Shown here: piece after piece, positions 8,741 to 32,262 of the stretch
Layout of the letters: each line of letters opens with the position of its first letter
How positions within the stretch are numbered: position 1 is the stretch's first letter
Assembly (NCBI GenBank): GCA_951804945.1
Contig: OX638150.1
Coordinates: forward strand, 48,174,001 to 48,238,000
Length of the DNA: 64,000 nt
Direction of reading: 5' to 3'
From: Podarcis cretensis
Lineage: Eukaryota
The notes under the pieces: generated by a model
Seen by the model: the letters and a program-made list of their open reading frames with translations, nothing else
Told to the model about the DNA's origin: nothing
The model's database searches: none
Made by a program: the position numbers and the translations under genes

Positions 8741-8784
8741 TAGTAGTAGTAGTAGTAGTAATAGTAGTAGTAGTAGTAGTAGTA
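8741..8784. repeat. (TAG)n microsatellite with one TAA interruption
   Basis: Read directly from the sequence. Confidence 0.97.
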
Positions 8785-10972: not shown

Positions 10973-12228
10973 GGATAGTGATGGGGAGAGCCGAATTCAT
11001 CAGTGTTCGTAACTGTTTAGATTGAATGCAGATCATATTTTCAACATGTTTTACATGTCTTTGAAAATTGGAAGTTTTCATGGATAGTGACATGGTTCTA
11101 TTATTCAAAAAAGATGACCTTAGGACAGAAATAGGTGTAGTTATACTTAAGATACAATTCTTATAAAGTATGAAGACCTCAACTTTTTCTATTTTATTTT
11201 CTGTGTGTATAAATTTAGAGAAAAAGAATGGTATCGTTTCCTGAAACCCACCTTTCTTACATTGCCATTGGCTTTTGATGATTTGTGCCAAATACCGGAA
11301 GCATAAGTTGCACTACTATATTTGTGACTATCAAGAATGTCAAAAGTGGTGACTCACACACTGAAAGCACAAGCAAAAGGTATAGACAAGTCCCACTTCA
11401 AGTGTTAATAATATACACTAACACAAGAAATTAAACTTTCTCCTATTATTAACATCCAAATAGCCTCTCAGTCATACTTTTTTCTTCTTTCACTCACACT
11501 TCAAAAATAAAGTGAGGGGATCTGTGTGAAATAAGATGAGGAAGCGTATAGGTTTATAGAGTAAAGAGCATAATCAGTCAGAAAATGTGCTCAGTAAAGA
11601 CTGGGAAAAGAGATAGCCAAGAAGAGAAGAAATTATACTGAGAGAAACTCATTCATACAATTTTGAATTTACTACTTTCCATGTAGAAAACAGTTCCAGG
11701 GATTATAGGAAGTAGCAGGGTACGTAGAAGAAAAAAGAGGTAGGGAGAGTAAACGCTGATGGCTAAATGGAACTTCTTTGTTCGGAATCTTCTGATCACT
11801 AGATGATGGGGACAGATCACTCATGAGATCTCGCAGGAGCTTCCCCAAAGGTCTCATGCAACCTTCCAAGGTGTTTCAGCAGCAGGGAAACTTGGAGTAG
11901 AAAGAGGTTTTAAGGTCCCGTCCCCCCCATTTTGCAGGCTCTGGGAAAGTTGCATGAGGGCTCCCCACAAGATCTCAGGTAGCCCTTCTGCGTCATGCCC
12001 CACCCCACTCTACCACCCCTTTTTATTTTTTATATTTTCTGCTATCTGCATAAAGCTGTGATTGCATATGTAAAATCAATGTAAGATGAGCTCTGCCTGT
12101 ACTTCTAATCATACATGAAGCAGAACCAGGGAGTTACAGATAGGTAGCCGTGTTGGTCTGCCATAGTCAAAACAAAATAAAAAAATTCCTTCCAGTAGCA
12201 CCTTAAAGACCAACTAAGTTAGTTCTTG

Positions 12229-12266
12229 GTATGAGCTTTCGTGTGCATGCACACTTCTTCAGATAC
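12229..12266 (-). ncRNA. Minimal type I hammerhead ribozyme motif (mirror copy)
   Basis: Exact reverse complement of 12283-12320. Confidence 0.8.
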
Positions 12267-12282
12267 ACACTGTATCTGAAGT

Positions 12283-12320
12283 GTATCTGAAGAAGTGTGC
12301 ATGCACACGAAAGCTCATAC
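12283..12320 (+). ncRNA. Minimal type I hammerhead ribozyme motif
   Basis: Helix I GTAT (12283-86) pairs with ATAC (12317-20); core CTGAAGA (12287-93) plus one extra A; helix II GTGTGC-AT-GCACAC (12295-12308); GAAA (12309-12); palindromic AGCT in place of helix III; predicted cleavage after C12316. Confidence 0.8.
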
Positions 12321-13689
12321 CAAGAACTAACTTAGTTGGTCTTTAAGGTGCTACTGGAAGGAATTTTTTTATTTTGTTCAGAACCAGGGAGGAGATACAA
12401 TTAATTTAATGGAGAGTTCAAACTAGCTCAAAATGGATATGTTACATGCAGTATCTATATGTAACATAAAAAATCAAGGTGTTCAAGCTTTTGATAATTA
12501 TAGATTAGATTATTTGCACACAACACTGAATACAGGTTTCAGACACTTATGAAATCAACAAAATTATTCTAACTTGAACTCTTTGAACTTTTAATTTATT
12601 ATTAAAGACGGAAGTAGAATCTTGCCTTCTGAACAAATGCTATCCTGCTAAATTATTGTCATCCTTTGAATCATTTACTCTTGTTGTTCTTGTGCCCACA
12701 AGTTCCAGTTAGGATCTTCTGCAGCATGTTTCTTAATGTTTCTGGCATATCCTGCTGTTATGATATGACTCATGCTGTGCATGAAGCCAGCTGCTATACT
12801 TGGTTGCCTCCTTAATGCGCTGGTACCCACTTTGTTTTCAACAACTGTAATCCAGACAGTGAACCTATCAGAGTAAGAAAGAAAACTTTTTTTGTTTTGT
12901 TACCTTGAATTACCCACTAATTGGGGGTGGAGGATTGCTTAATTTTTGGCATCAGTACTGTTGCCTGGCAGCATAAATGCTAGTTACACATAATTTTGCA
13001 GAATGCTTTAGGAAATTAATAAGAAAGACGTGACTTCAGTAAAACATATTAATTCTATTTATAACTGACAGAACTGCTGCTCGGTAATGGGAGTTCAGTA
13101 CAATACAGAGAAGTCCAGAATAAGTATTTCAGTTAATAACAGAATATATGAATGGTCATCTCAAGACAAATGGGATATGTTGCTAGTGTTGAGTAGAATA
13201 CATATACTGGTACGTTTCTGAAACTGGTTGAACAGCATGATTTTATCAAGCAGCTGTAGGTATTATGGTGTGGTAGCAACTGAAGTAGCATTTATTATTA
13301 AGCAAATTCATTTATTAACTTATTATTTAAATGAGATAATAAATTGGAGTGTTATCCTTCAAAGCTTTAGGGTTGATTGCACAATTTTTTCCCCGAATGC
13401 ATATACCGTAAATAGACAAGCTCCTTGAATGAAACTATAAAGTTAAAATAACATTTGGCAAAACTATTCCTTATAAACCTATAGAAGTCATTTTTTAAAG
13501 GACACGGTCCCTCCCTATATTTGAAATTGGAAGACAATGGTTATGCACAGTTATTTGAGCTTGAAAATGTTTTATTAAAATATAGAACAATGGATAACTG
13601 TGTACAAGCTATAACTGGATGAGTGAGCAACATGTTCCTGCATGCTGCCAAATAACTCTCACTGTGCTTCTCCCCTTTCATGAGCAAAA

Positions 13690-30247: not shown

Positions 30248-31782
30248 TTGAAGAGAGTAAACACAATTTCAAGCATCCCAGATGCTTTCAAATTGTTTAT
30301 ATCTTTCTGTTAATATTGTTCAAAGAACTTGAATTATTGAGCTGGTTGATCTTTGCAAAAATTAGATAAGATTTTTAAAATAAAGCATAAAAAACTTGTT
30401 GAACACTTACATTGTGAAGGATCAATGAATGTCTGTGTTACGTGTTTGAGATTTTGTCTACCATTGTTTTGTATTTGACTAGTTTTTTTTCATGGTTTTG
30501 AAAAATTGTTTCTGTTGCTAATTCCAGCATATTTTATCTTTTTTTACCTGCTAGCCAAATCATAATAAGGTTTTTCAAAGCAGAACAGCAAAAAGTTGCT
30601 TTCTCTCTAGGATTGAATGAAACAGTACCTTTCGTTTATCCAAAGAAGTTAATTTTACATTATGAGATCTCCAAGGAAAATTTATTAAAAGTGAAAGATC
30701 TGCATATTCATGAGTTATTGTTGCTGACAGCCACATACGTCTAAAGGGTACTTTCTAGACTGAACCTAACAAGGTTGCATTAGGGTGCAATTTGTTTTAC
30801 AACAGTGCTAATTTATCTTTTTTAATGCAAGCAAACTGAGTGAAATTAGGAAATAAATAATTGTTATATTTTTGTTGAAGTTTCAGTTATAAAGTGTGAT
30901 GATTGGGAGAGAACATTTGAATTAGAAAAATAAAATGAAAGACAAAATGTTAACAAAATAATGCATTTTTATTTTCAGCGCTCAGAATAACAGCTTTAGC
31001 TTTTCTATACTTGTTTGTGTCCTAAAGTACAGTATGATAAAAATAAGAAGGGGGGGGGGGACCCTACAGACATGACAGTTGCTTAAAGTACCATTTCCAG
31101 TGATGGAAATGACAGCTTCTCCCTAGGGAGAAAGAAACAGCCTCACAGTCATTCTTTTCTGTATATGTACTATTCCAAATACTAGATAGAAGCCCATTTG
31201 GCTTGGTTTTTCATCACTTTGTTTTTCCTGTGTTTTCTTTTATTTGTTTTTCTGTTGTTTCTTTTAAAACTACTGCAGACATTTGTGAACCATGGACCTG
31301 TAAATTGGTCCATCTTTATTTTGTTACTTGTATTTCAAAAACCCCAAGCAAAAATGATAGAGGAAAGAGGAGTACTTAAAATAGATGATTCTGAGAAAGC
31401 CTTAATTTTATAGAAACATGGGTAGTATTTGAAATAAATATTTCTTCAGAGCTGGCAATTTTAATTGGAATAATTGTTTTGACTATGAGCCAGTACAATA
31501 ATAGTAGTAGAGAGAATAGCTATATTTCTTAAAACAACACAATTTTATATAAGAGATCAAATTTCATATCTTCAGATGTAATATATATTGTCCCTCACAT
31601 AGGAAGTCAGCCAACCTGCATTCATCCCTGTCTGTAACATTGAAAAGTTTGGAGTAGATGGGTGGGGTGGAATGATAACTTCCCCTTATTTTCATTTTAG
31701 GGTACTGCACCAAAATGGGATGGCTCAGTGGTGTTATTTATATGTTTCATGTATTCTAGCTATACTGGAATTTATTCCACAT

Positions 31783-31884
31783 CAAAATAAAAAAATTCCT
31801 TCCAGTAGCACCTTAAAGACCAACTAAGTTAGTTCTTGGTATGAGCTTTCGTGTGCATGCACACTTCTTCAGAACTTCTTCTTC
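31783..31884 (-). mobile_element. Second Penelope-like terminal fragment with truncated hammerhead
   Basis: 31783-31873 is identical to 12173-12263; it is followed by an ACTTCTTCTTC filler; 11-bp TSD TTATTCCACAT at 31772-31782 and 31885-31895. Confidence 0.88.
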
Positions 31885-32262
31885 TTATTCCACATGATAT
31901 GGTTATGGGACTATTTTTTATCTGGTGTAATCTCATAGAATTGGACAAGTGCAATAAAATATGGTTAGGTATCCTGTATGTGAAAGAAGTAAAAAATTAT
32001 AAATGTGTGCACTTATATCTCTGTGTCTCATGCAGTACCAACATGCAGAGTTTGTACTTGGCTATCCATATCAGAAGCAGCCCTAAGGACTCATTAATCA
32101 AGCTAGTTTTGTCAAAATCAATTTGGCCAAAGAAAGAGGTGCAAAATTAGTTTCTCAGAGTGTCTTGCAAGGGTTGGTTGTTGTTTTTTTTAATCTGAAA
32201 ATTTTCAGAAAAAATCATGGAAGAATTATACATGCCCAGATTTCTTTCTTCATACTTTTGAC

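Follow-up and report, generated by a model that had tools for sequence, protein, structure and literature searches.

We analysed a 64-kb stretch of lizard DNA (the window, whose positions are used as coordinates throughout) that contains, at 12134-12378, a 245-bp insertion composed of two inverted copies of one short sequence, each with a minimal hammerhead ribozyme motif. Very probably, this locus is a very short and recent insertion of a high-copy lizard family of PLEs (Penelope-like elements), generated by two-ended target-primed reverse transcription, with the fold-back structure as a by-product of the insertion. The minimal hammerhead is a normal component of the terminal region of PLEs, and it is found in each arm of the fold-back because each arm copies that region.

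Anatomy of the insertion

A repeat search of the window identified two arms of 98 nucleotides (nt) each, at 12171-12268 and 12281-12378, which are 100% complementary and lie 12 nt apart. The same search detected a 13-nt direct repeat, CAGAACCAGGGAG, at 12121-12133 and 12379-12391, flanking the insertion on its left and right sides. This confirmed the claim of an earlier note on this DNA, which had described mismatch-free 98-bp arms, a 12-nt spacer and a 13-bp target-site duplication (TSD). An origin of the perfect 98-nt inverted repeat by chance is impossible. Alignment of a 135-nt unit, which corresponds to 12268..12134, revealed that the outer end of the left copy is 37 nt longer than that of the right copy, which ends at unit position 98. 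The layout is that of the 135-nt unit in minus orientation placed head-to-head with a 98-nt unit in plus orientation. The left arm covers element positions 98 to 1 on the minus strand, the right arm covers positions 1 to 98 on the plus strand and has a tail-less 3' end, and the 37-nt tail (12134-12170, minus strand) is extra 3'-terminal element sequence present in the left copy only.

The two copies meet at the spacer, 12269-12280, which reads ACTGTATCTGAA. Together with position 12281, the spacer repeats the first bases of the right arm: the 11 nt TGTATCTGAAG are read at 12271-12281 and again, in tandem across the spacer/arm boundary, at 12282-12292. This tandem repeat, which the earlier note had missed, is a signature of slippage or template switching.

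The insertion site in other organisms

Logan contigs of four runs were aligned to 11400-13100; the results given here concern contigs only and the part of the records that was listed. The site was filled in organism A (run X1), where contigs ran over the left outer junction (11400-12157) and the right one (12355-13100) with 0 differences from the window. It was also filled in organism B (X2), where the corresponding contigs covered 11400-12157 with 7 differences and 12354-13100 with 1 difference. In organism C (X5), one 3391-nt contig aligned to 11400-12105 and then to 12381-13100 with just 12 letters between the two segments, which is an empty site. In a second run of organism A (X8), the long flank contigs among the records listed end at 11974 and begin at 12402, and this run does not inform on the site. 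The 13-nt repeat is thus a true TSD, as the earlier note had proposed, since the orthologous site is empty in organism C and filled in organisms A and B, and the locus is a real, lineage-specific insertion.

The contigs from X1 and X2 also bear on the arrangement of the copies. At the left junction they enter the element tail in minus orientation and at the right junction they enter the arm in plus orientation. The element is therefore oriented in opposite directions at the two outer junctions, which supports the inverted layout from outside the assembly. Differences from the window in the flanks amounted to about 0.6% in organism B and 1.3-1.7% in organism C. With flank divergence this low, only about 0.6-1.7 mismatches between the arms are expected since the insertion, and finding zero is unremarkable. 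The perfect arms reflect the youth of the insertion and require no special explanation.

Family abundance, end positions and a solo copy

The element family is clearly very abundant. Between 10,222 and 29,112 contigs per run aligned to the element, and the summed contig depth over it was 4-5 orders of magnitude above that of the flanks, a depth that does not equal copy number. Loose contig ends, at which the sequence continues into unrelated flanks, clustered at three places in the element. One cluster lies at 12132, the tailed 3' end, with many family copies ending at 12132/12133. Another lies at 12169/12170 and its mirror position 12379, the tail-less 3' end, with many copies ending at 12378/12379 and at the mirror. 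The last lies at 12266 and its mirror 12283, the common 5' end. Both the tailed and the tail-less ends are therefore canonical across the family. The common family 5' end at 12283/12266 can account for the two arms stopping at one and the same nucleotide. In total, 616 joints were recorded on 11400-13100, and several of the 15 listed connect two inverted arms at other positions, indicating that head-to-head copies exist at other loci as well.

String, repeat and alignment searches of the window detected a third, solo copy at 31783-31873 on the minus strand. It covers unit positions 6-96, is 100% identical over 91 nt and is an independent insertion with its own TSD of 11 bp, TTATTCCACAT, at 31772-31782 and 31885-31895. 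The solo copy starts at CUGAAGA and hence is without the 5' strand of helix I of the hammerhead, and its 3' end lies 2 nt from the tail-less site. At its 5' junction there are 11 filler nt (31874-31884) that, read on the element strand together with the adjacent base, give GAAGAAGAAGTT and echo the adjoining GAAGAAG. Judged from the sequence, this filler reads as a slippage signature resembling the spacer of the fold-back.

In six small runs of the related organism F that were guessed to be RNA (X15-X20), 12-15% of the sampled words of the stretch were found, which is roughly the share of the element. The family may be present in transcripts of organism F.

The minimal hammerhead motif

Each arm carries, on opposite strands, the sequence GUAU-CUGAAGA-A-GUGUGCAUGCACAC-GAAA-GC-U-C-AUAC. 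A 34-nt string of this hammerhead was found without mismatch at 12287-12320 on the plus strand and at 12229-12262 on the minus strand. A descriptor of the minimal hammerhead ribozyme (min-HHR), written from published criteria (PMC4209133), was run on the window, with 200 dinucleotide shuffles of the window as the control. It matched exactly two sites in the window, 12283-12320 (plus) and 12229-12266 (minus), and gave 0 matches in the 200 shuffles. The exact string and the descriptor agree, and both uphold the earlier claim of a minimal type I hammerhead on each strand.

In the right arm, the core boxes CUGAAGA (12287-12293) and GAAA (12309-12312) are present together with U12315 and C12316, the latter being the predicted cleavage-site nucleotide (C17). 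A12294 is unpaired between positions 9 and 10.1, and G12295-C12308 corresponds to the G10.1-C11.1 pair. Helix I is short as published for this class, with 4 bp between GUAU (12283-12286) and AUAC (12317-12320), and helix II is longer than usual, also as published, with GUGUG(C)-loop-(G)CACAC forming 5 bp and a 4-nt loop, or formally 6 bp. The self-complementary AGCU at 12312-12315, palindromic over 15.2-16.2, takes the place of helix III in the manner of the dimer design. On sequence grounds, the motif of the arms thus has every published feature expected of a metazoan PLE minimal, dimer-type hammerhead. The earlier note had named a covariance-model search as a check of the motif, and here no Rfam hammerhead model (type I, type III, HH9, HH10 or type II) matched, with E values up to 10 allowed for a 721-nt region and for the arm by itself, and gathering thresholds applied to the whole window. 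This is to be expected of a motif in which the self-complementary AGCU stands in for helix III. The motif is a min-HHR and not a canonical hammerhead.

To what extent the motif is shared within the family can be seen from the family-wide variant table of the contigs. No position in 12283-12315 varies in at least 10% of the depth, and several positions just downstream vary at 20-45%. The motif is therefore conserved across subfamilies. A search of the window for diverged copies with blastn and nhmmer found only the three identical copies, so no covariation analysis was possible, and the 34-nt hammerhead, sought as an exact pattern in metagenome contigs, had 0 matches.

Helix II, GUGUGCAUGCACAC, is itself a perfect 14-nt palindrome that contains an ATG (12241-12254 and 12295-12308). 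RNAcofold predicted that two monomers pair via helix II and not via AGCU, a prediction that says nothing on activity. The predicted fold of the 135-nt unit (12134-12268, minus strand) pairs an AC-rich tail segment, AGACCAAC, with the upstream GUUGGUCU (unit positions ~55-62 and ~109-116) and encloses a T-rich stretch.

In longer family copies, the sequence just upstream of the arm runs through GGTCTGGTGACTTCTGTTTC followed by AG (12280-12281), with a consensus agreement of only 0.56-0.71. With its polypyrimidine tract and CAG, this string resembles a 3' splice acceptor placed right next to helix I of the hammerhead. The same arrangement of acceptor and hammerhead is found in the intron of D. 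virilis Penelope (PMC4209133). The many short copies that begin at 12283 or its mirror 12266 might do so because the RNA has a defined 5' end, and not by random truncation.

A proposed two-ended route of insertion and its alternatives

It is common for a PLE insertion to be accompanied by an inverted, 5'-truncated copy next to it and by a tail of 30-40 bp that is confined to one end (PMC8557442). The features found here are of the same kind: the TSD varies in length (13 bp at the fold-back and 11 bp at the solo copy), an inverted 5'-truncated copy lies adjacent, and a tail of 37 nt is present on one side. All structural features that we examined agree with a PLE insertion, putatively descended from an element with reverse transcriptase and GIY-YIG endonuclease. 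The Penelope-type identity and the insertion as inverted copies within a TSD, both put forward in the earlier note, are supported by the TSD, the head-to-head arms and the one-sided tail.

A possible route of insertion can be drawn from the anatomy, insertion status, family abundance, end positions and folding energies observed here, with the enzymology and the order of events taken by analogy from PAc, a PLE of Anolis. The PAc protein cleaves and extends both DNA strands in vitro, and its reverse transcription begins at two adjacent internal start sites, the tail being the sequence between them (PMC11167929). By this analogy, the GIY-YIG endonuclease of the element would cut both target strands with a 13-bp stagger, giving rise to the TSD. 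Each free 3' end would then serve as a primer on the element RNA, with reverse transcription beginning at one or the other of its two canonical internal start sites. Priming at the distal site would have given the left copy with its 37-nt tail, and priming at the proximal, tail-less site the right copy. Both cDNAs would end at nearly the same point on the 5' side, where hammerhead helix I starts and where family copies frequently have their 5' end, and would finally be joined head-to-head with an 11-nt slippage duplication.

Several points weigh against this reading. No contig among the records listed bridges the central 12-nt junction, and no Rfam hammerhead model recognises the motif, as noted above. 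The window contains no open reading frame (ORF) for reverse transcriptase or GIY-YIG that would mark an autonomous partner of the short family. The TSD CAGAACCAGGGAG is unlike the AT-rich, ATT-type site that PAc prefers in vitro, and the frame from the loop-II ATG closes after 9 codons, whereas the ORF of PAc starts in stem II. In addition, a snap-back of a single cDNA would also account for two exactly symmetrical 5' ends. The family is related to PAc in its architecture but is not established as PAc itself.

The snap-back alternative retains the same PLE insertion with a single priming event, in which the left cDNA with its tail reaches the RNA 5' end, folds back at its 3' end to prime itself, copies 98 nt and joins the other target end. 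It would account for both arms ending at exactly the same element position and would make the arms identical by construction, and at the centre one can draw an 11-bp stem closed by a 3-nt loop (12257-12267 / 12271-12281), after which comes an 11-nt slip. However, the end of the right arm at 12378 is a family-wide canonical 3' end, marked by the loose ends at 12379 and the mirror 12169/12170 and approached to within 2 nt by the solo copy, and under snap-back this would be a coincidence. Identical arms do not need self-copying either, given that the third copy is likewise 100% identical, and PAc extends both strands in vitro (PMC11167929). We therefore favour two independent primings on account of the right arm ending at the canonical tail-less site, and regard snap-back as unlikely. 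That the palindrome is instead an assembly artefact, created by mis-joined reads of a high-copy repeat, is barely credible. Tandem and inverted PLE structures are known to trouble assemblies (PMC8557442), and the central spacer is the part left unbridged among the contigs listed. Nevertheless, contigs of organisms A and B extend from each flank into the element by 24-25 nt, with opposite orientations, which places two inverted copies between one duplicated 13-mer, the site is cleanly empty in the related organism C, and long reads greatly exceed the 98 nt of an arm.

Possible masking of the ribozyme and transcription of the locus

The earlier note had also proposed that a transcript of either strand has the antisense arm ahead of the sense ribozyme, and the head-to-head placement of the copies bears out this geometry. 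The predicted folding energy of the full insertion was -184.4 kcal/mol for the plus strand and -179.0 kcal/mol for the minus strand, compared to -6.8 kcal/mol for the hammerhead-competent fold of the monomer. By these predictions, the 98-bp hairpin is certain to sequester the lone hammerhead if the locus is transcribed. A fold-back transcript has one sense copy only and therefore no dimer partner. The proposal of a ribozyme locked in a long hairpin thus stands with these energies, but its description as a self-masking cassette and its use to explain how a self-cleaving motif is tolerated do not, because the fold-back is a standard outcome of PLE insertion and there is little to mask. Masking would be a passive consequence of the insertion and not a selected function.

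The host intron that had been inferred around the locus was not established either. No Pfam match was found in the ten longest ORFs of the window, in which only four ORFs reach at least 120 amino acids (aa). A 201-aa ORF beside the locus looks, by eye, like a chance ORF, and none of the RNA runs was recorded as containing the stretch.

Functional explanations of the fold-back fare poorly against these results. If the locus were an adaptive self-masking cassette, the antisense arm would have been retained because it silences a harmful self-cleaving motif in a host intron. The folding energies make masking thermodynamically overwhelming, and tandem hammerhead retrozymes are reportedly depleted from introns and exons in vertebrates (preprint 10.64898/2026.07.22.740005), so that some selection against genic ribozyme repeats is conceivable. 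Yet a fold-back arises from the insertion mechanism whatever the context (PMC8557442), and the harm that would have to be silenced is doubtful: self-cleavage of single min-HHRs could not be detected and that of dimers was weak (PMC4209133), the PAc hammerhead needs the PAc protein for activity and its cleavage site coincides with no start or end of RNA-seq reads (PMC11167929), and the fold-back transcript has just one sense copy. As the insertion is so recent that its survival says nothing about selection, and its location in an intron is not established, we consider adaptive masking highly improbable. Equally little speaks for a host hairpin-RNA gene, that is, a microRNA (miRNA) or endogenous small interfering RNA precursor derived from the PLE fold-back. 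Transcription would turn the perfect 98-bp duplex into a Dicer or ADAR substrate, and several Rfam miRNA-precursor models score on the hairpin, among them MIR1222 with 71.6 bits and mir-3149 with 53.8 bits. All these scores are below the gathering thresholds, which are 90 and 100 for the two named, and occur on both strands, as for any long hairpin, and no Rfam match reaches threshold anywhere in the window. We rejected these sub-threshold matches as generic long-hairpin scores. Together with the absence of the locus from the close relative, organism C, and the lack of a recorded RNA run with the stretch, this makes a dedicated host gene very improbable.

A broader possibility, which we hold to be very improbable, is that head-to-head mini-PLEs in transcribed DNA act as natural hairpin-RNA genes, whose small RNAs or ADAR editing feed back on the still-active family. 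If true, such hairpin RNAs would be the counterpart in vertebrates of maize Mu killer and an automatic product of two-ended priming. In that case, ribozyme masking would follow as a side effect of this hairpin structure, in which the duplex covers both the hammerhead and the region where reverse transcription starts.

Two further features of the window lie outside this locus: a (TAG)n microsatellite of 14.7 copies at 8741-8784, and 188 N.

Significance of the locus

Beyond annotation, the locus matters little. As an annotated case, it is a clean and datable in vivo example of what PAc predicts in vitro, since a single integration probably involved both target strands and both start sites of reverse transcription and the site is empty in a relative. 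Miniature palindromic copies of this kind could record how PLE cDNAs join at their 5' ends, and slippage duplications are seen at both insertions in the window. The locus is also relevant to assembly quality and to avoiding false ribozyme or miRNA gene calls in reptile genomes. The depletion of retrozymes from genes reported in the preprint makes it reasonable to test whether the fold-back form is enriched among intronic copies.

Comparison with known systems

The closest known structures are the inverted and tailed PLE insertions (Evgen'ev and Arkhipova 2005; Craig et al. 2021, PMC8557442). The locus shares with these a TSD, strong 5' truncation, an inverted copy, a one-sided tail and a terminal hammerhead. 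It differs in being an extreme miniature of 245 bp, without an ORF or the body of a pseudo-long terminal repeat (pLTR), and in that both copies are truncated at the same nucleotide, which results in a near-perfect palindrome.

PAc, a Poseidon-type PLE of Anolis carolinensis, was compared by its published description (PMC11167929). It likewise has a lizard host and a hammerhead that overlaps an ATG, and its two start sites of reverse transcription, spaced by the tail, together with cleavage and extension of both strands, predict exactly a head-to-head product. PAc starts reverse transcription 111-118 nt into its ORF, and the tailed end of the locus lies 115 nt after the loop-II ATG. The predicted pairing of AGACCAAC with GUUGGUCU recalls the 'AC-rich stem loop' at which PAc starts reverse transcription (PMC11167929). 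In contrast to PAc, where the cleavage site lies 26 nt after the ATG, that of the locus lies 16 nt after it; the ATG frame of the locus stops after 9 codons, and its TSD is not AT-rich.

With the min-HHRs of metazoan PLEs (Cervera and de la Pena 2014, PMC4209133), the motif shares the CUGANGA and GAAA boxes, H17, the unpaired base 9/10.1, G10.1-C11.1, AGCU, a 4-bp helix I and a long helix II. Dual copies on opposite strands, 100-700 bp apart, were also seen among those min-HHRs, which are treated as well by Lunse et al. 2017 (cited in PMC6765202). The locus differs in that its helix II is itself the 14-nt palindrome GUGUGCAUGCACAC, and its lowest-energy dimer is predicted to form via helix II and not via AGCU.

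Retrozymes that lack long terminal repeats (non-LTR retrozymes; PMC7229834; 10.64898/2026.07.22.740005) are, like the locus, protein-less, hammerhead-bearing and linked to PLEs. However, retrozymes are head-to-tail tandems of type I hammerheads that yield circular RNAs by double cleavage, whereas the locus is arranged head-to-head with one sense ribozyme per transcript. A further comparison is offered by the inversions produced by twin priming in L1 (Ostertag and Kazazian 2001), in which the second target strand reportedly primes reverse transcription and leaves an inverted segment inside one TSD, as at the locus. In L1, the second primer is said to anneal internally on the same RNA, so that the inverted part is a different, more 5' segment. 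By contrast, both arms of the locus copy the same 3'-terminal segment from dedicated start sites. Taken together, the locus is an ordinary one, and its differences from known PLE insertions are of degree only.

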